Assembly: GCA_946965045.2 (NCBI GenBank)
Contig: OX337241.1
Coordinates: 1,674,001-1,738,000 of the forward strand
Source: Epithemia pelagica
Lineage: Eukaryota; Protista; Bacillariophyta
Length of the DNA stretch: 64,000 nucleotides
Reading direction: 5' to 3'
Shown here: positions 8,773 through 57,945 of the stretch, one piece after another
Numbering within the stretch: position 1 is the first letter of the stretch
How the letters are laid out: the number at the start of each line of letters is the position of its first letter
The notes under the pieces: model-generated
Told to the model about the DNA's origin: nothing
What the model saw: only the letters and a program-made list of their open reading frames with translations
The model's database searches: none
Made by a program: the position numbers and the translations under genes

Positions 8773-9043
8773 AATAGTTCCAACTCAGTATGAACCACAC
8801 CTTTTGTTTTGTTTCACTACATGTCTGCTGATTGCCACTGACATGACCATATCAAAGAGTTGCCTCGAGCTTATTTTGTTCTCCACAGTTCCTCGATTTG
8901 AACCCTTTCCTTTCAAGCGAATGAGAGTACACTATCCGAAAACGTGCTTTGATCTCTGAACATTGGTGATGGAACAAATCTAGGGAGGCAGTTGCCTACG
9001 CTTGTCTCTTTTGTGCTAGAATAGGTCACACTTTTCTCTCTAA

Positions 9044-9751
9044 GGGGGTATGTTATCGGGCGCGCGGAGCATGGGCGGAGAATGGATATGGGGGGAGCAA
9101 TGCATGCTCCCCGATGCATGCTCCGCGCGTCGATATTTTCGGTGGGCGGATGTAGAGATGCGGAGCATGCGCGACGGGCGCGCTCAAAATCCCCGACCGT
9201 CACGGAAACGCGTATGGGTCGCCTTAAGTATGGAATCGAAAAGGAAAGAGAAGAGCAAATTCAGGAAGACGATGGAAAGCAAAGGGATGGTTTCCGGACA
9301 CAATAATCATTCCCTTTATAGACTACTTATCATTTAGAGTATCCATTGTATATTTCACCTGTTGTTCTGTTGGCCCTACGGGCTCATGATGGAAAGACAC
9401 GCCAATTTCCATGCTCTATGGAAACACAACCTCCTGGTGGATGGAAAAGACTCCGAAAGACCAAGGCAGCAACAGTTGACCAACTATATGTACTTGTCTA
9501 CAATACTAGTGCCTAGATAGACTCTGTCGTCTCTTTTGTCCATGATAAATCCATCATCGGAAGACTTCGACTGTTCGACGCATTGAGTGTGTGGTGTGTG
9601 GGCGAGTGATTTTGCTTCCAACCTTGCTCCACCCGCACTCTTCCTCCGCATGTAAATTTTGCGGAGGAAAGCTCTATATCCGGGTTGGATTGGCCTTTCT
9701 CCGCCCATATCATGCTCCGCACATGCTCCGCGCGCCCGATAACATACCCCC
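9044..9751. mobile_element. 708-bp non-autonomous TIR element (MITE), PIF/Harbinger-like
   Basis: Perfect 30-bp TIRs GGGGGTATGTTATCGGGCGCGCGGAGCATG (9044-9073 / 9722-9751), with TAA on both sides (9041-9043, 9752-9754). Subterminal CATGCTCCGC/GCGGAGCATG copies at both ends. No coding capacity. Confidence 0.9.
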
Positions 9752-9845
9752 TAAGGCGCATCAGGGTGGTAAAAAAAATTCGAGGCAAAAATCAAGATTC
9801 GAGTTTCGAGGTTGGTCTAATAGGTTATGAATAGGTTATGTGTAC

Positions 9846-9941
9846 CCTCGAATCTTGACCTCGACTTTTGACCGAGGCGCACTTTTGAAAATTTTTGGGC
9901 CAAAGTGCGCTCCGACCAAAAATCGAGGTCAAGATTCGAGG
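9846..9941. repeat. Subterminal imperfect hairpin of the large TIR element
   Basis: CCTCGAATCTTGACCTCGA (9846-9864) pairs with TCGAGGTCAAGATTCGAGG (9923-9941), and inner GCGCACTTT pairs with AAAGTGCGC. It reuses the TCGAG..AAGATTCGAG motif of the TIR. Confidence 0.8.
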
Positions 9942-10429
9942 TTGCTCCTCGTCCGAGGTTTCCTCAAAACTCCAAACATCATCCCTATCTCTTCTTGTTG
10001 TTGTCTTTGTTAAAATCAACACGAGAATCAAGAATCAACCACAATGAGTCTTCATGGAAAGTCCTCCCATGAAGACAATGTGATTGCTGAAGAAAGAGAT
10101 GAAGAGGAGAACCCAGCAACCACAAAATTTGTCTCGACAGAGTCGGAGCACCAATTTTACACGGAGAAAGTCAACCTTCTCCAGGACAAGAGGCGCTACC
10201 AAACAAGACCAGCAATCACAACCACCCACCAAGCAAAAAGAGTGGACGTCGAGGAGAAAGTGTGGTTCCTCGAAAGCAACCGGTGTTGTTGGCGCTGTGT
10301 ATTGGTTGCGGCGCGCTGCCATAAGTAATCGCAACGGCTGGAAGGTGCACCTTGGAGTGTGAACAACGGACTTGCTGGCAAAATTCTAGGAGTGTCCACC
10401 AGAGAGGGAGGTCAGGCATTGGCAGAGAG

Positions 10430-11145
10430 AGTTAAAGGTGGGTAAAAAGCTAACTCTAGACGATAGGGTTAGATACAGTAGTTTCTCTAGGTCAACCTAT
10501 ATGCACAATAGACGATGGGGCCCTCACCTTCTATCAGCGTAATAGGTCGACTTCTCCGTTACAAAACAAGTTTGGTTATCAAACTGGATGTTTATAAAGA
10601 AGTGAGATTAAACTAAAGATTGTGTTTCTCATCTTGAGATGGTTTGGCTCCTCTCGGATCGTTCGGCCATCATCCCCCAAAATCTAGTCGTACATGAGGA
10701 ACGTATTCCTTACTTCAGTGGACAAGTGCTATGGAGCTACGATTAGGGACTAATAGAACTTGTTCTACTCCATAGAGGAATGTGTTCCATCTTGGGTTGG
10801 ATCTCCTGTTGATGAAGATCAAGTTCTATTCTCAAGGATCACGTTCTTTTCTCGATCCTCGATTTATGTAGCCCTTACTTCCGAGTGTAGCTCGTCCAGC
10901 GTACATCTCTTCCGAATAGTAGAGGGCATAGGTATTCTTATTCACAAATTCCTGTTGCGGGTCCATCTGTCTGTTCAACGGCCTACTTCTATTTAAGTAC
11001 ACGTAATGAATCTTAGATACACGTCAAGGTTTTGTGTCACAGACAGCGGTTTGTAACAGATGTCTCAAACCTGAACGATAAGCTAGGTGTGCTAGCTGGA
11101 CTAGTTGATCGGATACAGACGTTGTAGAATAGCTATGTCTTAACT
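10430..11145 (-). repeat. 3' LTR (termini AGTT...AACT)
   Basis: Direct repeat of 20071-20786; begins AGTTAAAGG and ends GTCTTAACT on the + strand. Confidence 0.95.
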
Positions 11146-11154
11146 CTCCCTCTC
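11146..11154 (-). other. Polypurine tract
   Basis: GAGAGGGAG on the - strand immediately 5' of the 3' LTR. Confidence 0.75.
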
Positions 11155-11218
11155 ATGGAGTGATTTCTCAAATTGCGATATGCCTCGAGATGTCGGAGAG
11201 CAGAAAGAGAGAGAGGAG

Positions 11219-14200
11219 TTACCATCCTTGATTAAGTTTTCGGCAGCGTTCAAATAGGTCACGTGCTTGACACTTTGTAAAGTAATCAGCTCGTTGTTCT
11301 TCTGTGCTCACCATGCTGACCTTAGTTCCTCCTGGGTGATCGCCAACATGTTCCCAAAAGAAATGAAGGTAGGTGTTGAAATGTTTTGTTCTAGGCGTCA
11401 ACCTTTGCTTCGTTGCAAGATAGAAGGCACCAGAATTATCTTCGAATACCTCTGAGTAGATTGTAGGCTTTTCGAATGGAAGGTCCAGATTAGTCAATAG
11501 CTCCTCTACTACACGTCGGGTAGCTATGACGCTACACATGGCTTGTGAGAGGGCATGGTACTCGGCTTGGAGAGTACTTAGGGCTACTGACGACTGAAGT
11601 TGGGAACGCCAAATTAAAGGGCACCCAGAAAGACTCAGAATATATCCTGTGCGGGATTTGGCGCTTATAGGATTATCTTGTGGTTCTCGTCCGTGTAGAC
11701 CGGCGAAATCGGCATCTACATAACAATCCAACTTAAAGTCTTTGGTAGGGGTGACAATCGTTCCCTTGTCTTTAGTACGCACTAGGTAGCGGACTATAGT
11801 TTTGATTGCTGCTGCGTGAGACTTCTTCGGAGCTGTACTAAATCTTGCTACTTGACTAACTGCAAAGGCTATGTCGGGTCGCGTGTTAGTGGCCAGGTAC
11901 AGTAGCATGCCGACAATGGACCTGTATTGCCATTTTTCTTGCATAGGTTCACCATCTGGATCACTTCCGAGTGCCAGTTGTGTGGCTGGTGTCCAGTTGG
12001 GCTTACAGTCTTGTAGTCCTGTAGCTTCGATTATTTTGTTGATCAGGCCCTTTTGGGTCATTGTAACTGACTTGGTCTTTTCGTCATGTGCAAAATTGAT
12101 GCCTAAGTAATCAGTGAAGTTTCCTTCTTTTTGCAAAGATAGTCCTTTCTCTTTCAGCCGTTCAATAAGGTCGTCTACAAGTTTCATTGTAGGGGCACAT
12201 ACACCACAGTCGTCTACCCAGAGAAAGATAATTATGTCTTTCTTGTACAGTAGACATTTATCATGCTTACTCATTTGGAAACCATCTTCCAATAGGGCCT
12301 TTACTAGGTGATGGTACCAAAGTCTAGGTGCGGATGAGAGTCTGTATAGACTCTTAAGAAGCCTGAGGCACATAGTTCCAGGTGATAATGATCTGAAGCC
12401 TCTTGGAAGGTGAATCCAGACAGGTTCATGGAGTGTTGCTTGCACGAATGCATTGTTGAAATCGATGCAAGCAAGCTCCCATCCTAGAACTAGACTAAGG
12501 ACAAGCACTATTCGAATTGTGCTCCAATTGACAACAGGAGAGTAATTTTCTTCTTCGGTTTCCTGTAGGTCTCCTCGTACACAGTACCTAGCTTTGTATT
12601 TTCGTATCTCTCCATCTGGAGAGCGCTTTCTTTTAAAGACCCATGTTCCAGGTAGGATTCTTGTAGTTGCCTCGGATTTCGGCACTTCTGTCCATGTTCC
12701 TTTCCCTTCTAGTTCCCTAATCTCATTTTCGGCCGCTTCTTTCCACCTATCTATGTCGTTATCTCGCATTGCTTCGTCATAGCTCAATGTGTCCGGGTCG
12801 GAAATCGACGCTTTCATCATTGAAAGCAGATCGTTAGGCTGATGGGACGGAGCTAGAGAGGCTAGGTTAGCATCCTGTACATAGCGTTGCGGTGGACGGA
12901 TAGTTCGTCCGGAGCGTCGGCTGGTTCTGAAAGAACTAGGTGGAGTCGGTTCCGGAGGAGGTTGTTCCCTCTTAGGAGTGACGGATTTTAAGGGGGTCAT
13001 AACAGGGGGTGAAGGAGGATCCTGCTCTGCGATTGGCGTTAAGACGGTGTTCTCCCTCTGAGGAAGGGGCGCTGCAACAGGGGTGTGTGGAACTCCCTCT
13101 GAAGGCAGTGTCGGTTCCGCTACGGGAGCAGAGTGAGAAGAAACAGGAGGCAAAGTGGGAGGAGTGGGTATGGGTAAAGGATCGTCGGGAATATGTCGAT
13201 CCATGGATTGATGGATATGATCCAATCGATTTTCATATTTGGATCGATGAACCTCATCAGTTGCCGTAGGCGATTCCATATTTTCTTCTGTTTCGTCTTC
13301 AGTATATTGATATCGAGATTCTCCGAATAATTGGTCCCATTCAGTACTAGTGAAATCTGGAACATCCTCAACGGAAGTGGCTATTGTAGAAAACCAATCA
13401 TCGAATACCACATGGAATTGCGGTGTGATATATCCTGTAGAAGGGTTTAAAACTAAAGGTACAGTTGTTGCGTGTCGATTACTCAAGCCCATTAGTATAC
13501 ACCGTGTGGAACGTGGCTTCCACCTAGGTAGCTTCTTTCCATCTGACATAGATTTGTCCAGTACGTAGACAGGGCAGCCCCACACGTGTAAGTCGTGGAA
13601 CTTTCGCTGCTCCCATCTAGTGCGAGTGAATAAATCATGTGGGCTTATTCCGGTGGCGGTGTTAGGGACATGGTTACATAAGAAGGTAGCATGGGACACA
13701 GCCATGGGCCACAGTGAGGGATCAGCCATTTCTGGCCAATGTATAGCGGCGTGTAGCATCATGGTGCGCGCTATAGACATAATTGTTTGTATGGCCCGCT
13801 CGGCTATACCGGCGTGATGATGAGCCCCTACTCCAGCAAAGCGGTATGTTTGAGCAAAAGTTTGTAGGGACTCTGTATATTTGGCAGAGGTGAATGCCGA
13901 TCCATTATCGGTGAGATACTGAGAGGGCATAACTCCAACGTCTCTACAAAATAACTCGAAGGAATTTTTAACGTGTAGAGTTTCATGAGTATTTAAGTGG
14001 CTCTGAAAGCCAATCCAGGTGTAACCCGAAGCGTGGTCTACGAATATTGCTCCACCCATATACATATCCTTAGACGTGGATGAACCCCGAGTATTAAATC
14101 TTCTTCCCTTAGTAGAGCATACGAAATGATCGACACTGACACATTGTCCAGGATACAAATTTTCTGCTTTTGTTATCCCCTTGCAATCCTTCACAATGGA

Positions 14201-17200
14201 ACTTGTGGTTCCAGGTGATGGTCTTCGCTTTTGTTTGCCATATTGACAGGCTGCACAAAGAGGTAAGTTCGTGAGAGTGGATGCTTTGATGTGGAGTCGA
14301 CGCTTGTGTTCACTGGTTGCAAGCACTCCGGTTCTCATAACGAATTGAACTTTTCGAAACGACAGGTGGCCGAAGCGATTGTGCCAACGTACCAATTCTT
14401 GTTGCGCTTCGCTTAAATTCATGTTGTGCTGTGATGTTTCTGAAATGATGGAGCTGAGAGCGTGTGCGCTTTTCTTTACTTCTTTGTGGTCGTACCCATA
14501 CGACATGGGCAGGTTGTTGGACGGATTGATGAGAATTGTGATTTGCGTTCGTTTCTTGTCACCGGGCATTCCTGTAAGCACCATTGTCTTTCCATCTTGG
14601 ATGATTTTCTCACCGTCGTATGTTTGGAGTAGACTTTGTGTTGACAGGAGTCTTGCGTTGGTCTTTGGCACAAGAAAGGCAGGGAGTTTGAGCCGTCTGA
14701 GCTTCCCTTCAGTGTCGAGCACAGACCACAAGACGAAACCTCGGCCCGTTGCCTTCATCCTGTTGGCGATCCCTTTTACATTGAAGTTTGGCAAGGGCTG
14801 GATTGTTCCGATGAAGTCTTGAGTCTGGTTTGTGATCGAGATGCTGGCTCCGCTATCCCAGATAATTGGATAGGATGCATTGTGTGGCATGGCGCTTCGT
14901 AAAGCGAGAGGATTCTGAAGGCAAGCTTGGAGTCCAGCTTGTGTAATTTGTTCCCATTGGTGGTGTGGTGTGCTCCCCAAGGTCCCGAAGACATCGCAGA
15001 GTGTGGGTCCCTCAAGGCACGCTGCAAGAGCGAACATTTCTCGTTCCCTTGCAGATCGTGTGTTCCTGAAGATGTCGACAGGATTTGTCGACGGGCGGTT
15101 ATTAGAGTTCCTATTCCGATGATGGTTCATCGGGTTCGATGGATGGTTGGCGCGATGGGGGTTCTGATAGCGGTCCATGGGTGTGGTACAGTATACTTCT
15201 TGTGGGTTGCGTCGTTTCTTGGAATGGATTCGTTGTTGACGAAGGCGTTGTTGCAAGGGTTGACGGTTAACCCGTGTCAGTCGAGTCCGCATTCGTGCTC
15301 GCTTGGTGACTGGAGCAGGGTGAATTGGTCGGAAAACGGATTTGCGTTTGGGACCGGCTCGTCGAGGGGACAAAGGTTGGTGTTCTCCCTCTTTCGAGCG
15401 ATTTGCCCTGCCAGAAAGCAACAATTTACCAACAGACACAACAATCAAACGAAGGCAGTCGAAGAGAACACGGCCATTAAGGATGGATCCAACAATGTTG
15501 CACCAGAAGGTGTGGAAGAGAAGCGTGTTCCCAAACAAAGGGGTTTGAGCTTGGCGACGTGGGTGGAGATTGACTCGGAAATGGTTGACAGTGGGTGGGC
15601 GCTGTGGCTGGGGTGAGAAGAAAGAACGGATAGGGGCAGTGTGTGCCACGCTAGGTGATTCCCAGGGTGCAACCATGAAGGCAGCCAACCAACAGCACAA
15701 CCAGGTGAAGAAAGCAGGTTGGCACGATGGGTGAATAAGAACACTCCAAACAAGGGCAGACCCGCCGTAGGTCAAATCTCGGATTCCCAAGTACAGATGG
15801 GTCATTCCCGACCAAATAGACTTAAAACCTGAAATAGTTGCATTGTTTGCATGTTCCAGAGGGTGTGGAACAGGTAGGATCCAAAGGATACTGGATAGGA
15901 CCACAAGAAGGGTCGTGAAGCTAGCCGCAAACATGTGCCAAGGGAAAGCAGGAATTGTGGTGGTCTCACCCTGCGTTTGTCCCGACCCGACAGGCGCAGT
16001 GTGGTTGCTTGCACGTGTAGGACCACGCGTATCTCCGGGCGTGGTGTCCGAGAAAGTACTATAAGGTGCATAGTTCATTTCGAACTGATCGAAATCCGGA
16101 AAGTCTTTGCTAGGGTCACGAGGCGTCTGTGATTGTGATGGATAGACTGTACTGCTAGATCCATCAGAACGGACACGATCAGGGCAGACCGGCGTCAGGA
16201 TGTCAGGAGCAAGGTCGCCGGCCGCTAAGTTCCAAGCAAATTCGTGAATGAGAGTCAAAGGCAGACTCCGATTGGAATAGGGTGATCCTTCAACCTGTTC
16301 ACGTTCATGAGTGTAAGTCCATAGTGCTTTAACAAGCTCGCCTTGGTTGTGTAGCTTGATTTCCAGCTCTCCACGTGTGGCTGGATCAGACTCACGGTTG
16401 AATGCAAGACGTGTTGTCACTAATTCCTCAGTCGCGTTGGTTATGAGGACGTCCATCTTGTCTGGATCTTGGTCAAACTCGTGCTTCGCCAGTACATTAT
16501 GGATCACAGTAATACTGTGGGGGACACACGTGAGGTATTGGATGATACTGTCACAGAGTGAGACGAAAGGGGACTCGTTGTTCTCGTCGATCTCATCTTC
16601 ACTTTCCAAATTTTCGTTTGCATCAGTCATCTCTTTGTCGTCGGAGCTCGAGTTCAAGTCAGCAATCTCAATGAGTGCCATCTTGGCATAGTATTGCGCA
16701 AAGGGATTGATGCGTGGGTAAGTGATATCTGTTTCGTTTGTTGTGTGAGAAGCGTCAGTGGGAACGTATTGTTCTCCAAGATTGCTTGTGTCGACGAACG
16801 ACGTCGAGGAGAAAGATTGTTCTCCATCCGCTGTGTCAGCCATGTCTTCTGCTTGCTGTTCCAAAGTCTCACATGCCTTGCTTCTTGAACTGAGATTTAC
16901 AGAGGGCGGATCTGAGATATTGACTGGTGACGGCGTGGTGTTGCTTTGATTGAGAAGGGCAACAAATTGTGCATGGTATCCTCGTTCAATTGGTCGATGT
17001 TCCATGATGCGAGCCCGACGAAGGCAAGGTGGCGGATCGGATTGAATCTCGAGTCCAGGCCAGACAGGAGCTGGATTTGGGTGGTGTGGGATCCTCGTAC
17101 CATCCAAATACCATCCAAGGTACCATTCTTCGTTCTTTACTCTTTGGTAAGCCTGTGCGATGGTAAGTTCCGGCTCTTGGTGTTGCAGAGCGTAAACGGT

Positions 17201-19861
17201 GTACTGCGCTCTCTCATAACGCATTCCATCTCGTCTTGCTTTTGCTGCTTCTTCCTCTATGGAGATCCGTGGATCTGTTGCAGGAGGACGCAGTCCTGGT
17301 TGAAAGCTTCTTGCCCATTCTTCCAAAGTTCTCACAGAGGGACGAGGTTGGAGATTGAGTCGAGGAGGTGAAGTGTGGTCCATCTGGATAGGTGAGATAT
17401 CTGGTTGCATTGCTGCAGGTTTCCTATCCTCTTGTTCCTCATCACTTGCAATCTCTCCTTTCTGCAAGTTCTTGAGAGGGGTCATTGAGATATTGTCATC
17501 GCTCAAAACCGAGCTGTCCTGTGTTGTATCGAGGATCGAGCTCATTGTTGTGTTGTGGGAACGCATATGTGTGTCGTCACTGCCAAGGTTGAGTTGAGAG
17601 CTGTCAAAGCTCGCTTCGTGTGCAGCTGTGTTTGCTTCAACAGTTTGGATGGCCATGCTTAGATCCGTGTCCATATTTTGGTTCTTGTTTGATGTGTCAT
17701 ACCAGGAGTTGATGTCCTCCCATTCGTCGAAATACAATGTATTTGCTTCTGCTTCTGTCTCACTATCACACCTCTTTTCACAGCAATGACGACGTACAAG
17801 AGGTGGTGGAGAAGAGAAGGACTCATCGGATGCAACAATTGACTCTCCAGACCCAACAATCAACCCCAGAGGAGTTCCTCCCTCTGTTTTCCGTTCTTCG
17901 GTGATGTGGTCCACACAACAATTTGTTTCTTCTTGGTTCTGTGGAGGATCCTTATTTGAATGGGAGGACCATTCCAGAGAGGACGTGTCTGCCGAGTGGT
18001 GATCAAAATTGGGATTGTTGACTGGGTGCTGAATCATGTTGGAAGAATTGGAGGTTCCGTGTACTTCCATGAAGTCGCATTGCATGACAAAGGCGCACAA
18101 GTCGAAGTCCTGTGTATTGGTATATCCTTTGTCGTCTTCTTCAAGAGACATGCAATCTGGAAGATCTTTCCAGTCGTTGGTGTTGCAGTCTTGGTCATTA
18201 CAAAGTACACAACAATCAAACTCCGTTTTCCAAGCGGACACGTCAAATTCGAGCTTGTGGGCTCGGGATTCCTTGGTGCCGTGCTTGTTTTTCTTGTATC
18301 CAACAATATGCTTGGCGGTCCCATGGGTGTCATTCCATCGTTTACAGATGGCGCACCAATAGTACATAACCCCGTCTACGATCATGGATTCAGGTTCATG
18401 AGAGGCCGGAGGCACAAGCCTCCACGGATGCGCCTTTGAACGGTCAACTCGAGTCATATTCTTTTTGTGTTGGGGTTTCTTCTTTCCCCCCTTGTCGCGG
18501 TGACCGGTCGAAGGATTGCGTGGTCCAGTGGATGGAGAAGGGGTGGGATTATGGCCAGGAGGGTGTTTCAGCGAATTGATGAGGGCATTCAAGTTTGCCT
18601 GGGTCATTGCACCCTTATGACCACCACTGCGATTCTGTCGAGGGGACGGAGTAGTTTTCGCGATTGCTTTGTTTGCTCCAAATGAGGTAGGTGGCGCTTT
18701 GGAGTCAGTGGCATGCTGCTTGGGGCGCCACTCGCCATCCTTGACACTAACCAAATATTTTGTGTTTGCTGTTTCAATGATATCGGTATACCACAGCTTT
18801 TCTTTTCGCATTTTCAGATCAGCAGTGGTGCGATCCTGGAAGCGAACTTCAATGATGGTGTCATTTAGACTCTTCGCCAAGTACATGAGCTCAAACTTGG
18901 GAGTGTCTGGCCACTCGGCACGTAGTATATTGGTCATCAAGCTAGCGGTCAGGGTGTGGTCGTACAACCCAGTGGCGATCAACGGTCGCGCCTTCTGCGA
19001 GAAGTCTTTGGTGAGTGCCATTATGTCTTGGCCCGGATATTTTTGAGGGAGTAATCCTCTCATATCTTTCTTCACCTGTTCCCAGTGTTGCGGTGAGTCA
19101 TGTGTCACTATTTTCACAAGCACCATGAAAAGCTCGGGGAACGATTTGACGTCCCGTGCTTGATCCTGCACTTCCCTTTTGAATCCCTTTTCAAGACAGT
19201 CGAACAGGAAATCTCGTGCGCTCACATCATTGTTGCGATCATACTTATCGTAATGAGTCATCTGCACGTCCATCAACTCCTTGACCTTGCTGGGAGTGTA
19301 TTTGGGATGTTCAGTCACAATGAAGAGCATTTCGGTGGGATCAAGGGGATTACGTAAGTACGCGATCGAGTCCATGCCATGCATGACAAGGTGTTGCTCA
19401 ATATCGTCCTTCAATCGACTTAAGTCTCCTTTCTTTTTGTCAAACTTGTCTTCAGGTCCTGTCACTCGGTCCTTGAACCGCTTGTCGTTGAAGGTACGTA
19501 CTTGAAGTGCACGCAAGTATTCTTGTCTTGCGGTTGGGTCTAACCCTTTCCAATCTGCTTTGGGTTTCCCGCCAGTCCAAATGACAAACTCATCTCGTTT
19601 GCTCTGGAAGATGCCGCCGATCTTAGGCTTAGTCGGCTTAAACACAGTGGGTGGAGCGTCCTCCTCCTCGGTCATGCTTGTTTGTCTTGACTCACCAATC
19701 AACCCGTCGGAGTTTTGCAATCTACCGGTTTGTTGGTCGTTGTTGGTGTCCTCCTCGTTGTTTTCAGTCCGCGCCTCTGGAACTCCTGTATCAGTGACAG
19801 TGGTTTCTTGCTGGGGTTGTTCGTCGGAATCAAGAGAGGATAGTAAGTCGAAACTTCCCAC
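11219..19861 (-). CDS. Copia gag-PR-IN-RT-RH polyprotein (2880 aa) with a very long gag-PR spacer
   Basis: Zn knuckle WCAICKRWNDTH; PR IWDSGAS; WHNRFGH..CAACQYGK; IN VSVDHF / TDNG / GIAER; RT KARYCVRGD, IDFNNAF, LWVDD; RH YVDADFAG, FEDN, QRADYFTK. The RT YGL motif reads YRL (12341-12343). The track start is GTG, and an upstream in-frame TAG sits at 19925-19927. Confidence 0.95.
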   Translation of the reverse strand: MGSFDLLSSLDSDEQPQQETTVTDTGVPEARTENNEEDTNNDQQTGRLQNSDGLIGESRQTSMTEEEDAPPTVFKPTKPKIGGIFQSKRDEFVIWTGGKPKADWKGLDPTARQEYLRALQVRTFNDKRFKDRVTGPEDKFDKKKGDLSRLKDDIEQHLVMHGMDSIAYLRNPLDPTEMLFIVTEHPKYTPSKVKELMDVQMTHYDKYDRNNDVSARDFLFDCLEKGFKREVQDQARDVKSFPELFMVLVKIVTHDSPQHWEQVKKDMRGLLPQKYPGQDIMALTKDFSQKARPLIATGLYDHTLTASLMTNILRAEWPDTPKFELMYLAKSLNDTIIEVRFQDRTTADLKMRKEKLWYTDIIETANTKYLVSVKDGEWRPKQHATDSKAPPTSFGANKAIAKTTPSPRQNRSGGHKGAMTQANLNALINSLKHPPGHNPTPSPSTGPRNPSTGHRDKGGKKKPQHKKNMTRVDRSKAHPWRLVPPASHEPESMIVDGVMYYWCAICKRWNDTHGTAKHIVGYKKNKHGTKESRAHKLEFDVSAWKTEFDCCVLCNDQDCNTNDWKDLPDCMSLEEDDKGYTNTQDFDLCAFVMQCDFMEVHGTSNSSNMIQHPVNNPNFDHHSADTSSLEWSSHSNKDPPQNQEETNCCVDHITEERKTEGGTPLGLIVGSGESIVASDESFSSPPPLVRRHCCEKRCDSETEAEANTLYFDEWEDINSWYDTSNKNQNMDTDLSMAIQTVEANTAAHEASFDSSQLNLGSDDTHMRSHNTTMSSILDTTQDSSVLSDDNISMTPLKNLQKGEIASDEEQEDRKPAAMQPDISPIQMDHTSPPRLNLQPRPSVRTLEEWARSFQPGLRPPATDPRISIEEEAAKARRDGMRYERAQYTVYALQHQEPELTIAQAYQRVKNEEWYLGWYLDGTRIPHHPNPAPVWPGLEIQSDPPPCLRRARIMEHRPIERGYHAQFVALLNQSNTTPSPVNISDPPSVNLSSRSKACETLEQQAEDMADTADGEQSFSSTSFVDTSNLGEQYVPTDASHTTNETDITYPRINPFAQYYAKMALIEIADLNSSSDDKEMTDANENLESEDEIDENNESPFVSLCDSIIQYLTCVPHSITVIHNVLAKHEFDQDPDKMDVLITNATEELVTTRLAFNRESDPATRGELEIKLHNQGELVKALWTYTHEREQVEGSPYSNRSLPLTLIHEFAWNLAAGDLAPDILTPVCPDRVRSDGSSSTVYPSQSQTPRDPSKDFPDFDQFEMNYAPYSTFSDTTPGDTRGPTRASNHTAPVGSGQTQGETTTIPAFPWHMFAASFTTLLVVLSSILWILPVPHPLEHANNATISGFKSIWSGMTHLYLGIRDLTYGGSALVWSVLIHPSCQPAFFTWLCCWLAAFMVAPWESPSVAHTAPIRSFFSPQPQRPPTVNHFRVNLHPRRQAQTPLFGNTLLFHTFWCNIVGSILNGRVLFDCLRLIVVSVGKLLLSGRANRSKEGEHQPLSPRRAGPKRKSVFRPIHPAPVTKRARMRTRLTRVNRQPLQQRLRQQRIHSKKRRNPQEVYCTTPMDRYQNPHRANHPSNPMNHHRNRNSNNRPSTNPVDIFRNTRSAREREMFALAACLEGPTLCDVFGTLGSTPHHQWEQITQAGLQACLQNPLALRSAMPHNASYPIIWDSGASISITNQTQDFIGTIQPLPNFNVKGIANRMKATGRGFVLWSVLDTEGKLRRLKLPAFLVPKTNARLLSTQSLLQTYDGEKIIQDGKTMVLTGMPGDKKRTQITILINPSNNLPMSYGYDHKEVKKSAHALSSIISETSQHNMNLSEAQQELVRWHNRFGHLSFRKVQFVMRTGVLATSEHKRRLHIKASTLTNLPLCAACQYGKQKRRPSPGTTSSIVKDCKGITKAENLYPGQCVSVDHFVCSTKGRRFNTRGSSTSKDMYMGGAIFVDHASGYTWIGFQSHLNTHETLHVKNSFELFCRDVGVMPSQYLTDNGSAFTSAKYTESLQTFAQTYRFAGVGAHHHAGIAERAIQTIMSIARTMMLHAAIHWPEMADPSLWPMAVSHATFLCNHVPNTATGISPHDLFTRTRWEQRKFHDLHVWGCPVYVLDKSMSDGKKLPRWKPRSTRCILMGLSNRHATTVPLVLNPSTGYITPQFHVVFDDWFSTIATSVEDVPDFTSTEWDQLFGESRYQYTEDETEENMESPTATDEVHRSKYENRLDHIHQSMDRHIPDDPLPIPTPPTLPPVSSHSAPVAEPTLPSEGVPHTPVAAPLPQRENTVLTPIAEQDPPSPPVMTPLKSVTPKREQPPPEPTPPSSFRTSRRSGRTIRPPQRYVQDANLASLAPSHQPNDLLSMMKASISDPDTLSYDEAMRDNDIDRWKEAAENEIRELEGKGTWTEVPKSEATTRILPGTWVFKRKRSPDGEIRKYKARYCVRGDLQETEEENYSPVVNWSTIRIVLVLSLVLGWELACIDFNNAFVQATLHEPVWIHLPRGFRSLSPGTMCLRLLKSLYRLSSAPRLWYHHLVKALLEDGFQMSKHDKCLLYKKDIIIFLWVDDCGVCAPTMKLVDDLIERLKEKGLSLQKEGNFTDYLGINFAHDEKTKSVTMTQKGLINKIIEATGLQDCKPNWTPATQLALGSDPDGEPMQEKWQYRSIVGMLLYLATNTRPDIAFAVSQVARFSTAPKKSHAAAIKTIVRYLVRTKDKGTIVTPTKDFKLDCYVDADFAGLHGREPQDNPISAKSRTGYILSLSGCPLIWRSQLQSSVALSTLQAEYHALSQAMCSVIATRRVVEELLTNLDLPFEKPTIYSEVFEDNSGAFYLATKQRLTPRTKHFNTYLHFFWEHVGDHPGGTKVSMVSTEEQRADYFTKCQARDLFERCRKLNQGW

Positions 19862-20056
19862 TCCACTGGAGGAGGTTGGGGAGTCTTGGTCGTCAGCCGT
19901 ATTGGAGCTGGAGTCAGGGAGAAGCTAGATAGCTTCAGCGCGCAAAGCGGTCGGGTAGACGCAATAATCCACCTGAGCTAGTAGAAGGGACAAGCTCGAT
20001 GTCTCGTCCTTGGGATCGATCAACAGATAAAAGCGTAGGGTTCGTCAGCCTCTGTT

Positions 20057-20070
20057 TGGGCTCGATAACC
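20057..20070 (-). other. Primer binding site, half-tRNA(iMet)-like
   Basis: GGTTATCGAGCCCA directly after the 5' LTR. It resembles the complement of the tRNA-Met anticodon arm (GGTTATGAGCCCA) with one extra C. Confidence 0.6.
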
Positions 20071-20786
20071 AGTTAAAGGTGGGTAAAAAGCTAACTCTAG
20101 ACGATAGGGTTAGATACAGTAGTTTCTCTAGGTCAACCTATATGCACAATAGACGATGGGGCCCTCACCTTCTATCAGCGTAATAGGTCGACTTCTCCGT
20201 TACAAAACAAGTTTGGTTATCAAACTGGATGTTTATAAAGAAGTGAGATTAAACTAAAGATTGTGTTTCTCATCTTGAGATGGTTTGGCTCCTCTCGGAT
20301 CGTTCGGCCATCATCCCCCAAAATCTAGTCGTACATGATGAACGTATTCCTTACTTCAGTGGACAAGTACTATGGAGCTACGATTAGGGACTAATAGAAC
20401 TTGTTCTACTCCATAGAGGAATGTGTTCCATCTTGGGTTGGATCTCCTGTTGATGAAGATCAAGTTCTATTCTCAAGGATCACGTTCTTTTCTCGATCCT
20501 CGATTTATGTAGCCCTTACTTCCGAGTGTAGCTCGTCCAGCGTACATCTCTTCCGAATAGTAGAGGGCAAAGGTATTCTTATTCACAAATTCCTGTTGCG
20601 GGTCCATCTGTCTGTTCAACGGCCTACTTCTATTTAAGTACACGTAATGAATCTTAGATACACGTCAAGGTTTTGTGTCACAGACAGCGGTTTGTAACAG
20701 ATGTCTCAAACCTGAACGATAAGCTAGGTGTGCTAGCTGGACTAGTTGATCGGATACAGACGTTGTAGAATAGCTATGTCTTAACT
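20071..20786 (-). repeat. 5' LTR (termini AGTT...AACT)
   Basis: Direct repeat of 10430-11145. Confidence 0.95.
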
Positions 20787-21180
20787 GAGAGAGTTGCTGC
20801 GTGACGAGAATCGGTGGTGTTGGCAGGAAGGAGAGAGAACCACAACTCCACGTGTCTTGTTGTTGTTGGTGTTGGTGTTGCTTTCCCAAACAAGCCCTGT
20901 GGACAAGACAAACCTCCACTCTTGGAGTGTGACTTGACGTCGTCTTTCACCAGTGTCACAGGATGTGGTGGAACCGTCGAGAGGAAAGCAGTAGTAACGG
21001 ATATAAGCAACAACCACAACAACAACAACAATACCTATGCACTACTTCGTCTACTGTTATGTTGGAGGCAGTTGTATGAGATGAGTAAAGGGGGTACGCG
21101 GAACCTCGAAACTCGAAATTAATCTTATATCAGCAATATCCTACTAGTAATAAAAAAACTCATCGCGTGTGACCGTGCAG

Positions 21181-21230
21181 ACTGAACCAGGGACTGAACT
21201 TTTTGAACTGGGGACTGAACTTCATGAACC
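21181..21230 (+). repeat. Phased TGAAC array upstream of the tyrosine recombinase
   Basis: TGAAC at 21183, 21195, 21204, 21216 and 21225 (12/9/12/9 spacing, 21-bp period). Two more ACTGAACC copies lie at 24339 and 24348, downstream of the ORF. Confidence 0.7.
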
Positions 21231-21384
21231 GGTTTATGCGACTGTAGTGCTGCACGCCTACTCTATGGTCTAGTCTTAGAAAACAGTCTAGTTGCTCACA
21301 TTTTGATGGCCCCACCATGCCATTATGAACGGAAACCAATGATGAGTGGATGTCGCAAGAATCATGTAAAATAAAAACTCATAG

Positions 21385-23745
21385 ATGCTTTCCACCATGT
21401 CCCCCTTCCCTGTAGCGGGCTGGAAGGTCCATTCTGTCTTTGGAAGTCACTGTCTTGTATTGAAGGAGTCATTTCTGACAGCTTCCATTGAACAATGTCG
21501 AAAATGGGCGTCCGACAACCATCTCGACATCAATGGGACCTTCTTTCATGTGACTAGAACAACCCGTGGAGCTGATGAGTCTACACCTACTCTAAAGAGA
21601 TACCATGAGAAATATGAAGAGCTTTTTAAGTTCTGTTGTGTTATTGGTGATTGGAGGAGTGCCTGTTTGTTTGGTCGTCATGACAATGGTGACCGTCGTG
21701 TTTGTCCATCGAAGCCATGGAGTGCGCGACCAGAAACACTCGTGAAATTCATGCGGTGGAAGAGTTGGACGAAAAACACACCACTCACATTCAATAATTC
21801 ACCAGTTTGCGATGTGTACGGTGTTCCTATGAAGTGTGTTGGTCACTGGCACGATCCGGGCAATATTGACCAGTTATTCGCGGCAGTTGGATCGCTACAT
21901 CGTATATACGATGATTTGTGTACCGACACATACAGTGAAGTGTGTAATGAGTGTGTGACACTTAACAGTAATGTGTCACATGAAGAGCAGGGGCATACCA
22001 TTTGGCGGTCTTGTCGCGCGCATTCCGGCTCTCCCAAACTACGCCCCTACGGGAATCCTATGTATGCGCGCGTGTTAAATGCGGAAAAAATTCAAATGAA
22101 AAAGAAACTGGCATCTGAGCATATTTGCAAAGGCAATATTCGACTATTGCCTGGACACGTGCGCGATCTCCGGAATTACTTATGGTGCAAAGGTGATATC
22201 TATGGGATGATGCTCTACGTCATGAATCTGATTGGGATTTCCCTGTTTTTGCGCGCTTCAGAGCTTCTTGCGATTAAAAGTTCGGATTTTATCCGTGCGG
22301 GCCATATTGTCAAACCTCACGGAGTGTCTTCACTGGTAATCAAGATCCAAGGAAAGAACGACGACCGTCCAGTTTACATGAAGCTATTCCGGAATGATGA
22401 ATGTCCGGACTTGTGCCCTGTGCGTCATCTGCTCTTCTACGTCGAAGCTGCCGGCCTAGATGGAGATGACTCATACCTGTTCCTGCCGAAGAAGGCCATC
22501 ATGGACATTAGCCTGGGCAAGATTCGTCACAATGCACACATTGGGCCTATGTCATATCCTTCATGGCTCGCCGAGATGAAGAACATGATCTCTACAGTGA
22601 TACCTGAAGTGTACCATGATGAAACCAGTACAATTGGTACCCACACCCTAAGTAAAGTTGGGTACCTATTTGCTGTATGGGGTACGCTAAAGACCCTTAG
22701 CACCTTCGAGCGTGAAGCGACACGACAACCAATGGATAAAAATGGTGAGGTGAACCCTCACTATCCTACGGTCTGTTACTCGGATATCACGGCGGCGGCT
22801 CGGCACAAGTCGATTGCGACGGCTGCCTTGTACATCCAGAATAGCACTATGCTATTCTGGACGATACAAGAGCAGGGTGATCTTTGGACAAAGAACAGGG
22901 TGGCAACGTGGAAAATGAACTATATTGGCGTTTCTATGTCTGCGGTACAATCTATTTCAGCGTACTCACATGCTTTTCAGTTTCCTTTGTTTAAGCAAGC
23001 AGAGTTTTTCATTGAGAAGGAATTGGGTTTACCTTTGCTGAAGTCCGAGAACAGGGAACAGCGGTTGGTTGTTAGTTTTGGAGATGTCGATGCAAAGTTG
23101 ACAGATTTGGCAACTGTGAATGGAATTCTCAATGGCCAAGAGAAAACACTCATTAATCTACTGAACGAGAAGGAGCTCCCACCTTCTTTTACTACGAAGG
23201 TGGTGGGCCTCGTTCATGACATGCAGCGGAATGCTCTCGTTGCGGGACGCGAAGGAGCGAAGAGGGTGGCGGAGCAGCACTCTTCATCATCGGACTGTCG
23301 GAAACAACAACGGGTCAGCCAGCTGATGGAAGTCACTTGCACACCCAGAACACAACAACCTACCCAGCATTCACCTACGGTGCTGGTGACTCCTCCTACG
23401 GTGCTGGTGACTCCTCCTGCGGAAACAGGGCTAGGATTGTTTGCTAGATTGGAGATTACTCGAGACTTGGGGCATTGGAGGACGAAGTGGTCAAGGATGA
23501 AAAAATCAAAATCAAAGGCAGATAGAAGACAGATGATGAATTTCCTACGTGCACTTGCCGAGATCCCACGCTGTGAAATGAATGACGCGGCCAGGCAGTG
23601 GAAACTGAGGGTATTGAAGGTGTTGGAGTCGTTTGAGAATTGTGTGATGCATTGTTATGCTGGAGATAGAGGCAAATTCTGCATTGGAAAGCACAAGGGG
23701 GTGAAAGATGGATGCAACAAATGCACATGTGACAAGGGGGATTGA
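21385..23745 (+). CDS. Crypton-like tyrosine recombinase (786 aa); HxxR arginine replaced by Ser
   Basis: YR boxes LFLRASELL (R), QGKND (K), GTHTLSKVGYLFA (H-x-x-R reading H-T-L-S) and AARHKSIATAALY (H...Y). Cys/His clusters at the N- and C-termini; no RT or DDE domain. Confidence 0.8.
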   Translation: MLSTMSPFPVAGWKVHSVFGSHCLVLKESFLTASIEQCRKWASDNHLDINGTFFHVTRTTRGADESTPTLKRYHEKYEELFKFCCVIGDWRSACLFGRHDNGDRRVCPSKPWSARPETLVKFMRWKSWTKNTPLTFNNSPVCDVYGVPMKCVGHWHDPGNIDQLFAAVGSLHRIYDDLCTDTYSEVCNECVTLNSNVSHEEQGHTIWRSCRAHSGSPKLRPYGNPMYARVLNAEKIQMKKKLASEHICKGNIRLLPGHVRDLRNYLWCKGDIYGMMLYVMNLIGISLFLRASELLAIKSSDFIRAGHIVKPHGVSSLVIKIQGKNDDRPVYMKLFRNDECPDLCPVRHLLFYVEAAGLDGDDSYLFLPKKAIMDISLGKIRHNAHIGPMSYPSWLAEMKNMISTVIPEVYHDETSTIGTHTLSKVGYLFAVWGTLKTLSTFEREATRQPMDKNGEVNPHYPTVCYSDITAAARHKSIATAALYIQNSTMLFWTIQEQGDLWTKNRVATWKMNYIGVSMSAVQSISAYSHAFQFPLFKQAEFFIEKELGLPLLKSENREQRLVVSFGDVDAKLTDLATVNGILNGQEKTLINLLNEKELPPSFTTKVVGLVHDMQRNALVAGREGAKRVAEQHSSSSDCRKQQRVSQLMEVTCTPRTQQPTQHSPTVLVTPPTVLVTPPAETGLGLFARLEITRDLGHWRTKWSRMKKSKSKADRRQMMNFLRALAEIPRCEMNDAARQWKLRVLKVLESFENCVMHCYAGDRGKFCIGKHKGVKDGCNKCTCDKGD

Positions 23746-24885
23746 TGGCCCCCTCTCACATTGTCTACAAGGCCTGAAGGTGGTTGTAAAGGTTGTCGCC
23801 TGTTACCCGTGGGACAGTAACAGGTGGGTGGTGGTGGGAACGACCATAAACACACAAAAACTGCATATTCTTGTTTATCTTAGTCTATTTGTTAACTCTA
23901 CATTGTTTTCTGTAGTCAAATGTGCCTTTTTGGTTTGTACATAGGCACAACAGACGACAAAAGACAAGACAAGAAAAGAAAAGGCATGCGACAAAGGGCC
24001 ATCACGAGACGGAAGGAGTTATGAAAACTTGGTCGCACTTATATGGAATACAGTTCTACTCATTAACCTAATGACCATCATGGATGCAACCATCAAATGG
24101 ATGATATGGTCCTACGGCCGAAAGCGCAACAACAAAACACAATCGAAGCTCGAAGCATGAAAAACGAGCAAAGTGCGCAAAAATCTGAGATTGAGTCGTC
24201 GGAAGTTCGGACAAAACCAATGGTCGGAAGGCGAAGGCGTAAAAGACCCCGGAAACAGCGCCCACGTGCTCGGTTATGGAGCAGAGGTGGGGCTCGAGAA
24301 GACACAGTACCACAGTGCAACGAAAAGTATGGGCCAAAACTGAACCGACTGAACCGCTCGTAATAGAATCTTTTACCACCGTGAAAGATCCTAGGTTAAG
24401 AATTCGAGGCCCGTAGAAGACCCCACCTCGAAACTCGAATCTTGATTTTTGCCTCGATTTTTTTTTACCACCCCGATGCGCCTAAGTTAGGAGTATACCT
24501 CACATCTTGCTTCGTGAGATAGCTGGGGGCGAGGCCCAAAAAAGGGGGTCTACTACGAATCATGGGGCACTTCATAATTTCCAGAGTTATCATGAGAATA
24601 TTGAGTAAATAATAGTAATTAATGATGAACCAAACACGATCGAGCGTAACAATTGAAACACGAATCGAAACTGCAAAGCACCAAGCACCCTCGCCCCTCG
24701 CCATCAAACTCACTTTGCGATTTTCGCGGCATTCATCATATTGTGCGTCCATCGCTCTGTGGTTGGTTGTCCCTGTCGTTCAGCTTCGAGAGAGTACAAG
24801 GACGATTGAGCCTGGTTTTGATTGTCTGAACACAGCCGACTTGACATCTGATCTTATTCCTTGATAGATTTGCAGGTATAGAAAG

Positions 24886-54405: not shown

Positions 54406-54417
54406 CGCCAGGACGGG

Positions 54418-57400: not shown

Positions 57401-57945
57401 ACACCAAAAGCGCGACAAAGTCTGGGAGCGATGGACAGAACACCTCGACAAGATTGGATTCGGTCACGATCCACTCCTCGAGTCCATCAAAGCATCCAAC
57501 CACAGAGCCAGCATCGCATGTTCCTTCTTGCAATCCCTCCGAGACGCCGAATTCACCAAGAATTGCGACCGCTCGAACCCTCTTCGAGCAAGCACTCTTG
57601 GCCAAGCCATTGGAGACTTGGCATCGTGCTTCCGGCATCATGACCGGCCGAGCCCCTGCCACTGTCAAGACAGCCATCACGTCCACCCCCTCGTCGCCTC
57701 CCTCAAACGCGCGTGGTCAAATTTGGACCCCCCCGAAAAACGAGAGAAAGCCATTACCGCCAAACATCTCCGTTTCCTCTGGCTCCACTGTTGTCGAACC
57801 AACAGACTCACCAACCCACCACGCGTCTACGACTTCTCCACCTTCAAAGCCGTCGTCGCCGACCTCGCAGGATGCGGCTTCTTCTTTGGATGCAGAAGCT
57901 GCGAGATTACGACCGTGCCCCACAGAGGAAAAACAAAACTCCTAA
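54418..57945 (+). CDS. Ngaro pol: reverse transcriptase + RNase H
   Basis: RT: SKFDWSSAYRR, LRLTFGA, SYLDD, VLGW. RH: HADSC, NLFEYIA, SLSDNSSAVGW, HIPGSKNDASDILSR. No ATG until ~250 codons in. Confidence 0.92.
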   Translation: MIVASSSIPPLLSRDDSQPTINSNTIVAESSSHLKPLAPPPPLSSKIVPSFLPPLATPSSDHKPKIPSTANPFLIHHITQDYSRYPETRQRELSDLISSVQNQCVITSDSAPKISASVDAPTSSPTTANSHPRPTTKDHPTDSLTVDSSTRPPSPPSSHSENLPSQIAESLPGSSSAIIGSDFTGKPLAKNVKRLEQARQADLKLLGEFNIADDTTFSSPSSGKCYLPNEISEIFPTRLAPPPLQPIRHPSRLSVMLFIADHEPPTPKPSPFRHSIDDSVVLSNATFNSQLIERFDFDMQRVIDSHPDSVITPGSEFRTAQILEPLLAGHPYWSRFHHNITHGVSYPLTAEEDEPARRAENEAILEYGNHASGKKNPEALSKVLRKDASKGFSLPITFNCAKRIKHSRISPMGVAHQMGIDANGNLVPKDRLTHDQSFSLGFCPSTNDLIDQSKLIDLVMGHCLDRVLHQIVALRLAFPTDRILISKFDWSSAYRRVHGNGDVAARNITIDPSNSFAHLNLRLTFGASANPAEFSIVSEIGTDFCNDLADFDEWQPDLCQSPLQEGIGGPKYLPEDIPIAPACELAVSVPTCPHGFHDSYLDDMIQVFLATNPHLGRCPSIVPLVVHLMTRPVAKDEPITRKDMLEADKLEAEGAPAEEQRVLGWIVDTRRLLLCLPKDKLIGWTREVQHLLKTRCTTFHNLRSLIGKLLHATKGIPHASFWLSRLREYQTFIERAFRQKQKAKPPETNKNLKRPRPNRDVPPSFYRYSIPDSISKDLEMWPSLLQHAHNGISLNRLVCRVPTHLFHADSCPEGMGGYSVRSGRAWRFRIDPARLQALAQLDPSSTNTRTNNLFEYIAIVVSMWVDCLFDGIEENSSVLSLSDNSSAVGWMYKSSFGSDKLLHVQVSKKLTELILHHKFSLQAEHIPGSKNDASDILSRHWHLNDNKLTLFLHKNFCSQIPANFCIKPLPNEITCWISSIVPACPESSSARPKEHTKSATKSGSDGQNTSTRLDSVTIHSSSPSKHPTTEPASHVPSCNPSETPNSPRIATARTLFEQALLAKPLETWHRASGIMTGRAPATVKTAITSTPSSPPSNARGQIWTPPKNERKPLPPNISVSSGSTVVEPTDSPTHHASTTSPPSKPSSPTSQDAASSLDAEAARLRPCPTEEKQNS

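Follow-up and report, generated by a model that had tools for sequence, protein, structure and literature searches.

The 14.7-kb element at positions 9755-24482 of the window (the 64-kb stretch of Epithemia pelagica DNA analysed here) is very probably composed of three nested transposable elements of known kinds: a non-autonomous PIF/Harbinger shell, a Crypton-like unit carrying a tyrosine recombinase (YR) gene, and a Copia retrotransposon. We regard the arrangement as a single case of nesting rather than as a novel hybrid class of transposon. The original prediction, which was based on the letters of the window, described the visible anatomy accurately. Its terminal inverted repeats (TIRs) of 58 bp with TAA on both sides are present (58-61 nt in our analysis), as are its subterminal TCGAG-motif repeats, and the roughly 4.4 kb that it expected after removal of the Copia element amounts to 4,360 bp. 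Its title is misleading in one respect, since it presented the YR as the only large gene of the TIR element's own, whereas this gene is a property of the nested insert (Table 1).

Table 1. Features of the nested locus, in window coordinates.
Feature	Position	Strand	Remarks
Left TAA target-site duplication	9752-9754		Common to the adjoining MITE at 9043-9751
Left TIR	9755-9815	+	Starts GGCGCATCAGGG...; end shared with about 10 other copies in the genome
Left part of non-autonomous shell	9755-10429	+	Contains subterminal palindrome and ORF1 remnant
Subterminal 40-nt palindrome in left part of shell	9846-9941
Remnant of family ORF1	10044-10241		First 71 aa
Copia 5-bp duplication, GAGAG	10425-10429 and 20787-20791
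Ty1/Copia LTR retrotransposon	10430-20786	-	Domain order integrase before RVT_2
Copia LTRs	10430-11145 and 20071-20786		716 bp, 99.6% identical
Copia single ORF	11219-19861		2880 aa
Middle part of shell	20792-21126	+	Continuous with 9755-10429 in 1,118-bp sister copies
Left AATCTT of 6-bp direct repeat at insertion point	21121-21126	+
Insert, probably Crypton-like	21127-24372	+	3,246 bp including second AATCTT; without TIRs
Subterminal direct ACTGAACC-type motifs of insert	21181-21232 and 24339-24356
Tyrosine recombinase gene (predicted fold)	21385-23745	+	786 aa, single exon
Right AATCTT of 6-bp direct repeat	24367-24372
Right end of shell	24373-24482	+	Includes right TIR, 24422-24482
Right TAA target-site duplication	24483-24485

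Anatomy of the shell and the nested Copia element

When the TAA and one flanking base are counted in, the TIR arms (9751-9815 and 24422-24486) are 65 nt long and 94% complementary, and the element ends proper match over 58 nt at 96.6%. The hexamer TTCGAG is enriched at the left end, with four occurrences within 9755-10000 compared with 26 across the window, and the right end shows the mirror-image hexamers CTCGAA and CCTCGA. With both inserts removed, the shell aligns without gaps, at 99.6-99.7% identity over 1007-1013 bp, to the two copies of 1,118 bp that lie on C4 and C5. A tblastn search with the family's own DDE transposase found no remnant anywhere in the window, in agreement with the earlier remark that no DDE gene was visible. 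A DDE remnant inside the element is thereby ruled out, and the window copy is hence non-autonomous; just the first 71 aa of the family ORF1 survive in it. The empty allele CTCTC-TAA-GTTAGG, which the original prediction had proposed, was searched for in this assembly and was not found elsewhere. A FYVE/Ysc84 gene neighbours the element, and a second copy of this gene (P0053) is encoded among the other assemblies.

The nested LTR element, about 10.4 kb in size and inserted in the left half of the shell, was assigned to Ty1/Copia because its integrase precedes RVT_2. Its subtraction leaves a remainder in which the YR gene is the sole ORF longer than 103 aa, as had been predicted. Judging from the identity of the shell to its sister copies and from that of the two LTRs, all three insertions (shell, Crypton-like unit and Copia) are recent.

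The TIR family across the genome

About 11 members of the TIR family were counted in the 60.5-Mb genome, with 3-bp TAA, TTA or TGA duplications. Nine copies other than that of the window were read at both ends, and seven of these have a matching duplication pair (TGA in four, TAA in two and TTA in one), while L058 and L062 have none. The four TGA duplications deviate from strict TWA. Two members, the C2 and C11 copies, are autonomous and each carries DDE_Tnp_4. The C2 copy is 3,749 bp long, and its DDE_Tnp_4 ORF (456 aa, E 6e-26) and ORF1 (559 aa) are both open; the C11 copy has the same pair of ORFs, with a DDE_Tnp_4 of 489 aa (E 1e-25). In both, the second ORF (559/560 aa) remained without a Pfam match, and so without one to Myb/SANT, when hits up to E 1 were allowed. 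The non-autonomous members include the 1,118-bp copies and a divergent, 92%-identical subfamily of 714 bp. Given the shared TIRs, the 3-bp duplications and the autonomous copies with DDE_Tnp_4 elsewhere, this is a genuine PIF/Harbinger family, as had been suspected from the TIRs and TWA duplications alone.

Harbinger copies are frequent landing pads in this genome, and the autonomous C11 copy, too, contains a nested LTR element.

A discrete insert carries the recombinase gene

The YR gene lies in a discrete 3.2-kb insert about 110 bp from the right end of the shell. In this insert 258 bp precede the gene and 621 bp follow it, and the 6-bp repeat AATCTT is present at both junctions. Ten other copies of the TIR family were examined at this junction, including both autonomous copies and the 714-bp subfamily, and in all of them AATCTT is followed without interruption by TTACCACC, leaving the pre-insertion sequence ...AATCTTTTACCACC... 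unbroken. The insertion is thus the derived state, and the short copies are not deletion products. A model in which they descend by deletion from a YR-bearing parent was rejected because the junction is intact in both autonomous copies as well as in the 714-bp subfamily. Moreover, since the window shell shares 99.6% identity with the 1,118-bp subfamily and the junction is uninterrupted in the others, the YR-bearing copy falls within lineages devoid of the insert. The YR is not ancestral internal sequence, the insert being absent from both autonomous copies and from all non-autonomous subfamilies. These observations support the first of two readings originally offered, namely that a Crypton landed in a non-autonomous Harbinger.

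The insert contains one ORF and no reverse transcriptase (RT), LTRs or TIRs, and it is too small to accommodate an RT. A search for inverted or long direct repeats bracketing 21127-24372 found none, and a Helitron or TIR nature is excluded by the lack of matching termini or inverted repeats. Three of the window's four ACTGAACC octamers are located near the two ends of the insert, in the same orientation. The combination of short terminal direct repeats and a YR with no TIRs, LTRs or RT makes it highly likely that the insert is a Crypton-like element, present as a single copy in this assembly.

A tyrosine recombinase lacking its second catalytic arginine

A Pfam scan of the 786-aa protein returned nothing at E up to 10, and searches of PDB sequences, whether by the protein or by a profile of 16 sequences, gave nothing meaningful, so that its identity was settled by comparison of folds. 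The AlphaFold model, with a pLDDT of 80-90 over residues 70-550, predicts a two-domain tyrosine recombinase. In the VIA comparison this structure matched Cre/Tre with a Z of 16.1 over residues 53-495, covering both domains, and its catalytic domain matched lambda Int, XerA and XerH with Z values of 12-13 and rmsd of 3.2-3.8 A. Ndc10 was also among the structural matches listed, and the top Foldseek matches were all YRs. As judged from the model, the protein is a tyrosine recombinase with a Cre-like fold.

The catalytic set of the window protein is R290, K324, H420, S423, H474 and Y483. All but S423 are invariant in the family and fall at the expected YR catalytic positions. Position 423 is Ser (codon AGT) here, compared with Arg in 15 of 15 aligned homologues, and Arg423 is kept also in two 99%-identical variants from other assemblies (P0001 and P0017). 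The full R-K-H-R-H/W-Y set is therefore present in the family but not in the window copy. This copy is likely to be catalytically dead through R423S and, having lost its second catalytic Arg, is probably unable to move itself.

Five of the 16 family members match Pfam NDC10_II, and among named Atlas clusters NDC10_II+GCR1_C comes closest, DUF3504 being listed as well. In the window YR itself, a GCR1_C domain was not detected. In Epithemia clementina, a 45%-identical relative occurs in roughly 10 copies, and at least seven copies on different contigs are near full length and at least 90% identical. The window also holds a Ngaro-like element with a YR-like ORF. Its ORFs have no Pfam match, and the YR-like ORF matches the YR family at motif level only (E 0.14), which makes them unfit as the outgroup of a tree.

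Proposed history and alternative readings

We propose that a 1.1-kb non-autonomous PIF/Harbinger member inserted at a TAA, its family presumably depending for its movement on the autonomous C2 and C11 copies, whose DDE_Tnp_4 transposase would act in trans. A 3.2-kb Crypton-like element would have integrated near the right end of this shell, most likely when its YR recombined a circular form with the target, the two sharing an AATCTT core; such an event would leave the hexamer at both junctions. The 10.4-kb Copia element would have inserted into the left half of the shell with a 5-bp duplication. In all probability, the YR gene is a passenger and not the transposase of the shell.

Alternatively, the shell and the Crypton-like unit might be a composite in the making, mobilised in trans as one unit. 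A precedent has been published in MarCry-1_FO, which has four copies with TIRs and TA duplications (PMC3212892). In such a case, a dead YR element would have exchanged its own mechanism for piggy-back DDE transposition, as the first step toward a MarCry-like family. Both TIRs and the subterminal regions of the window copy are intact and 96-100% like those of other copies, and the autonomous C2 copy with its two open ORFs could act as a source of transposase. However, the genome has only one composite copy, its 14.7 kb are about 13 times the usual non-autonomous length of the family, and nothing shows movement after the insertion. We therefore consider both the composite and the exchange of mechanism that it entails to be unlikely.

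The 6-bp repeat could instead be microhomology left by a repair event. Short microhomology is usual at the junctions of captured genes, and a YR fragment might have been acquired by transduplication, through template switching in gap repair with AATCTT as the microhomology and with no Crypton integration. The single-copy state of the unit would be in keeping with capture, but it also means that there is no donor copy anywhere in the genome. Moreover, the gene is complete, with flanking sequence on either side and matching subterminal motifs at both ends, and its relatives are multi-copy in E. clementina. Gene capture is accordingly quite improbable, more so than the composite.

The second reading originally offered was a hybrid family or new class. 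In the form assessed here, the TIR shell and the YR gene would be parts of one element, and the TIRs would be the substrate of its YR. The YR is indeed the sole long ORF between the TIRs of the window copy once Copia is removed, but this reading now has almost no credibility, because 10 of the 11 TIR copies lack the YR (two of them with a canonical DDE_Tnp_4 gene), leaving one copy rather than two or more in which these TIRs enclose it; because the YR gene belongs to a separate insertion that has a 6-bp repeat of its own; because, in the DNA read (short of the C10 cluster of paralogues and the outer ends of the multi-copy YR family), no YR relative was found within TIRs or beside a DDE gene, neither at the 22 paralogue loci (0 with the TIR within 1.5 kb, apart from the window's own) nor among metagenomic relatives (no inverted repeats bracketing the gene in 15 loci with flanks on both sides, and a DDE gene at 0 of 32 loci); and because TWA duplications of 3 bp are the hallmark of a DDE transposase rather than of a YR.

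Relation to known systems

Like PIF/Harbinger and Tourist-like elements, the shell family has TIRs that start with GG, 3-bp TWA duplications, DDE_Tnp_4 and a second ORF in its autonomous copies, and short copies in which internal deletion has spared only the ends. It differs in that four copies have TGA instead of TAA or TTA, and in that Pfam shows no Myb/SANT match for the 559-aa second ORF. Tec1 and Tec2 of Euplotes likewise have a YR gene between their TIRs, and these elements encode it jointly with a DDE transposase in an architecture that is fixed for the family. In E. pelagica, by contrast, DDE and YR can be separated, the YR having come in by a secondary insertion.

Cryptons lack TIRs and carry terminal direct repeats of 4-6 bp that are taken to be recombination substrates (Kojima and Jurka 2011, PMC3212892). 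The insert resembles CryptonS and CryptonF (Goodwin 2003; PMC3212892) in having a single YR gene within about 3 kb, no reverse transcriptase, TIRs or LTRs, and a 6-bp direct repeat at both termini. Cryptons are known from stramenopiles, usually at low copy number, and CryptonS occurs in a diatom (PMC3212892). Moreover, relatives of the window YR match NDC10_II, and Cbf2/Ndc10 has been traced back to Cryptons (PMC3212892). The insert differs in its terminal repeat, which is AATCTT in place of the TATGG common in CryptonS, and in its YR, with no detected GCR1_C and Ser at the second catalytic Arg.

The joining of a Crypton with a TIR transposon is itself already published, as MarCry-1_FO of Fusarium oxysporum has a Crypton YR inside a Mariner-type element, with at least four copies more than 97% identical and TA duplications (PMC3212892). 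In both cases, the YR gene of a Crypton lies between TIRs that belong to a DDE transposon. MarCry, however, has its own DDE transposase and moves as a unit in its at least four copies, whereas the E. pelagica shell lacks a transposase and there is one composite copy. If this copy nevertheless proved to be mobile, a MarCry-like composite family would have been caught at copy number one, and the gene for a dead recombinase would have been given a second way to move.

Because other copies of the host element keep the exact pre-integration sequence and the 6-bp repeat is present at both junctions, a Crypton-type integration has been mapped here to the base pair. Crypton ends are usually hard to define, and these junctions fit the circle-integration model proposed for Cryptons. 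A hybrid of TIRs and YR would have been a new class of element, and the evidence removes that reading. Nevertheless, the locus offers a natural allele pair, with R423 in other assemblies and S423 here, that may be used to test recombinase activity. It also carries a caution for annotators: since Harbinger copies often serve as landing pads, the only gene between a pair of TIRs may not be the element's own.

The element and its family

The element lies exactly where the original prediction had placed it, ends and flanking TAA included, and the terminal inverted repeats (TIRs), subterminal TCGAG repeats and nested Copia retrotransposon described there were all borne out (see table). With the TAA and a single flanking base included, its inverted arms measure 65 nt at 94%; BLAST matched the ends over 58 nt at 96.6%. 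TCGAG-type hexamers cluster in the subterminal 250 bp. Once Copia and one GAGAG are removed, 4,360 bp remain, in which the tyrosine recombinase (YR) gene is indeed the sole long ORF. The Copia ORF has the domain order gag_pre-integrs, rve, RVT_2; its integrase and RT are confined to the last ~1,100 aa, its start is gag-like with a zinc-knuckle-like motif, and its middle (about 1,300 aa) matched no Pfam family.

Coordinates of features in the window
Feature	Position	Strand	Size	Details
TIR element	9755-24482			left end GGCGCATCAGGG..., right end ...CCCGATGCGCC
TAA on both sides of TIR element	9752-9754 and 24483-24485
Nested Ty1/Copia	10430-20786			716-bp LTRs, 99.6% identity; GAGAG duplication
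Copia ORF	11219-19861	minus	2880 aa	single, uninterrupted
YR-bearing insertion	21127-24372		3,246 bp	6-bp direct repeat AATCTT at bounds
YR gene	21385-23745	plus	786 aa
MITE	9043-9751			45-nt TIRs (GGGGGTATGTTATCGG...)
Ngaro-like ORFs	53554-58703			no Pfam match
ORF with HxLR...RW...Y motif	57285-58703		472 aa	weak alignment (E 0.14) to box II of YR family

Searching the 60.5-Mb assembly (23 contigs, with the window at C17:1674001-1738000) with the left 220 bp of the element, we found 10 more copies whose right ends match as well; they measure ~0.71 (three), 1.00, 1.03, 1.12 (two), 1.28, 3.75 and 9.74 kb. Both ends were read in nine of the other copies, and in seven of these the 3-bp duplications match (four TGA, two TAA and one TTA). 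On contig C2, the 3,749-bp copy carries a 559-aa ORF and, on the opposite strand, one of 456 aa that contains a full DDE_Tnp_4 domain (E 6e-26), and the same ORF pair (DDE_Tnp_4 E 1e-25), separated by a nested LTR element, is present in the 9.7-kb copy on contig C11. The TIR family is therefore PIF/Harbinger, and this genome includes autonomous members of it. In line with the original prediction, the transposase has left no trace in the window copy, and of ORF1 the first 71 aa alone remain. The 559-aa ORF on C2 (locus L054, 789-2465) has no Myb/SANT or other Pfam domain at E up to 1. The LTR element on C11 (locus L053, 2119-7864) is a second case of nesting: its LTRs are 100% identical over at least 300 nt, its 1417-aa ORF has no Pfam match, and it sits between the transposase gene and ORF1, both of which are still open.

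A MITE present in dozens of copies or fragments across the genome adjoins the Harbinger family twice, in the window and at locus L004 1721-2432 (G000 C11:1923964-1924675). Each MITE/Harbinger pair has one common 3-bp duplication, TAA in the window and TTA at the autonomous C11 copy, and the two MITE copies, 99% identical, lie in opposite orientations. Given about 11 Harbinger and about 40 MITE copies in 60 Mb, the likelihood of two chance adjacencies is negligible, and the arrangement suggests that TWA sites next to a PIF-type terminus are preferred as targets.

The YR gene lies in a discrete insertion

Aligned with two 1,118-bp copies (on C4 and C5), the Harbinger shell yields two blocks, one covering positions 1-1007/1013 at 99.6-99.7% and running straight over the Copia site, the other the final 123 bp at 97.6%. 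The 3.2 kb between them has no match in the rest of the family. At the corresponding junction every other copy examined, the autonomous pair and the 92%-identical 714-bp subfamily included, is uninterrupted, with ...CTCGAAA(C/T)(T/C)AATCTT directly followed by TTACCACCGTGA.... In the window, ...TAATCTT is followed by ATATCAGC... at the left junction, and ...TAATAGAATCTT by TTACCACC... at the right. Because the junction is uninterrupted elsewhere and AATCTT is doubled here, the YR gene lies in a discrete insertion, about 110 bp from the Harbinger right end. No inverted termini were found in this insert. Three of the window's four ACTGAACC octamers, together with related CTGAAC copies, lie about 100 bp or less from one or other of its ends, all in one orientation; to judge from the sequence, these motifs are candidate protein-binding sites. 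Derivation of the short copies by deletion from a YR-bearing parent is not in keeping with these alignments, since divergent subfamilies and autonomous elements have the uninterrupted junction and the YR shell is almost identical to one young subfamily.

A probably Crypton-kind recombinase with a substituted arginine

Pfam and PDB sequence searches with the 786-aa protein were blank. A word search returned 16 relatives: one from another assembly (99% identical), a 793-aa protein of the diatom Epithemia clementina (45%), and otherwise unnamed environmental proteins (24-31%). Of the 16 family members, five match Pfam NDC10_II (best E 3e-7). R290, K324, H420, H474 and Y483 are invariant in the family alignment and R423 nearly so; these six are the predicted catalytic residues of a tyrosine recombinase, in the usual order. 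The AlphaFold model made from this alignment (mean pLDDT 72.5; 80-90 over residues 70-550) resembles Cre/Tre from about residue 50 to about residue 500 (Z 15-16), and its catalytic domain matches lambda Int, XerA, XerH and Tn1549 Int at Z 12-13 (rmsd 3.1-3.8 A), with Ndc10, Flp and type IB topoisomerases further down the list. In the language-model Atlas the nearest clusters are NDC10_II/GCR1_C, with DUF3504 and DUF3435 lower. The call of a tyrosine recombinase, probably of the Crypton kind, is thus sound.

A new detail is that residue 423 of the window copy is Ser (AGT), where 15 of 15 homologues have Arg; Arg423 is kept in the 99%-identical proteins P0001 and P0017 of other assemblies. Because this position corresponds to the second catalytic arginine, the window copy is probably inactive, by analogy with Cre, Flp and lambda Int. 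Public ENA assemblies hold three 786-aa versions (P0001, P0017, P0018), one identical to that of the window and two that differ at 6-10 residues and retain Arg423; P0017 has Trp in place of the invariant Arg473. The neighbouring FYVE/Ysc84 gene occurs on a 1,357,660-bp contig for which no YR version is recorded, a hint that in another assembly the site is empty or the location differs.

Shell and recombinase do not form one family

The 3.2-kb YR unit is single-copy in the genome, besides a 215-bp fragment (83% identity) on C4. The protein has paralogues of two sorts: fragments grouped on C10, with identity of about 50%, and a family on C2, C3, C5 and C7 that is about 32% identical (loci L036-L042 and L046-L050; G000 C2:838k, C2:4835k, C7:200k, C3:1535k, C5:1165k, C5:2726k). 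Copies of the latter, about 3 kb each, share 99% of their DNA sequence and have neither TIRs nor duplications at readable boundaries; this family is probably Crypton-like and currently active. Except at the window's own locus, no Harbinger TIR lies within 1.5 kb at any of the 22 paralogue loci. Among metagenomic loci, whose short contigs limit both comparisons, none of 32 encoding YR relatives has a DDE_Tnp_4 or ORF1 relative, and in none of the 15 with two-sided flanks is the gene enclosed by inverted repeats. In E. clementina, at least 7 nearly complete copies of the relative (at least 90% identical) are spread over different contigs, as expected of a mobile element.

Two readings had been proposed, a Crypton that landed in a non-autonomous Harbinger element and a hybrid family in which TIRs and YR belong together. 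With 10 other TIR copies lacking the YR, and paralogues lacking the TIR, the hybrid is refuted by the criterion that the original prediction itself had set: no TIR+YR family exists here. The first reading is supported by the autonomous family members and the discrete insert with its 6-bp repeat.

Probable origin of the nested locus

Cryptons are YR-only DNA transposons without TIRs, whose termini carry 4-6-bp direct repeats regarded as recombination substrates of a circular intermediate; CryptonS elements are known from oomycetes and one diatom (Kojima and Jurka, PMC3212892). The 3,246-bp insert agrees with this description feature for feature, in its YR, its lack of TIRs and its 6-bp terminal repeat. 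A composite of Crypton and TIR element moving as a unit is not unprecedented, because in MarCry-1_FO a Crypton inside a Mariner-type element is moved by the latter's DDE transposase (PMC3212892). The window composite exists once and gives no sign of movement. Capture of the YR gene from elsewhere is argued against by the absence of a donor copy, which accords with conservative excision and integration.

The best reading is that a Harbinger deletion derivative transposed to the TAA of the window, and that a Crypton circle would then have recombined into this shell at AATCTT; Copia would also have inserted into the shell, before or after the Crypton. The locus is a nest of insertions by elements of known kinds.
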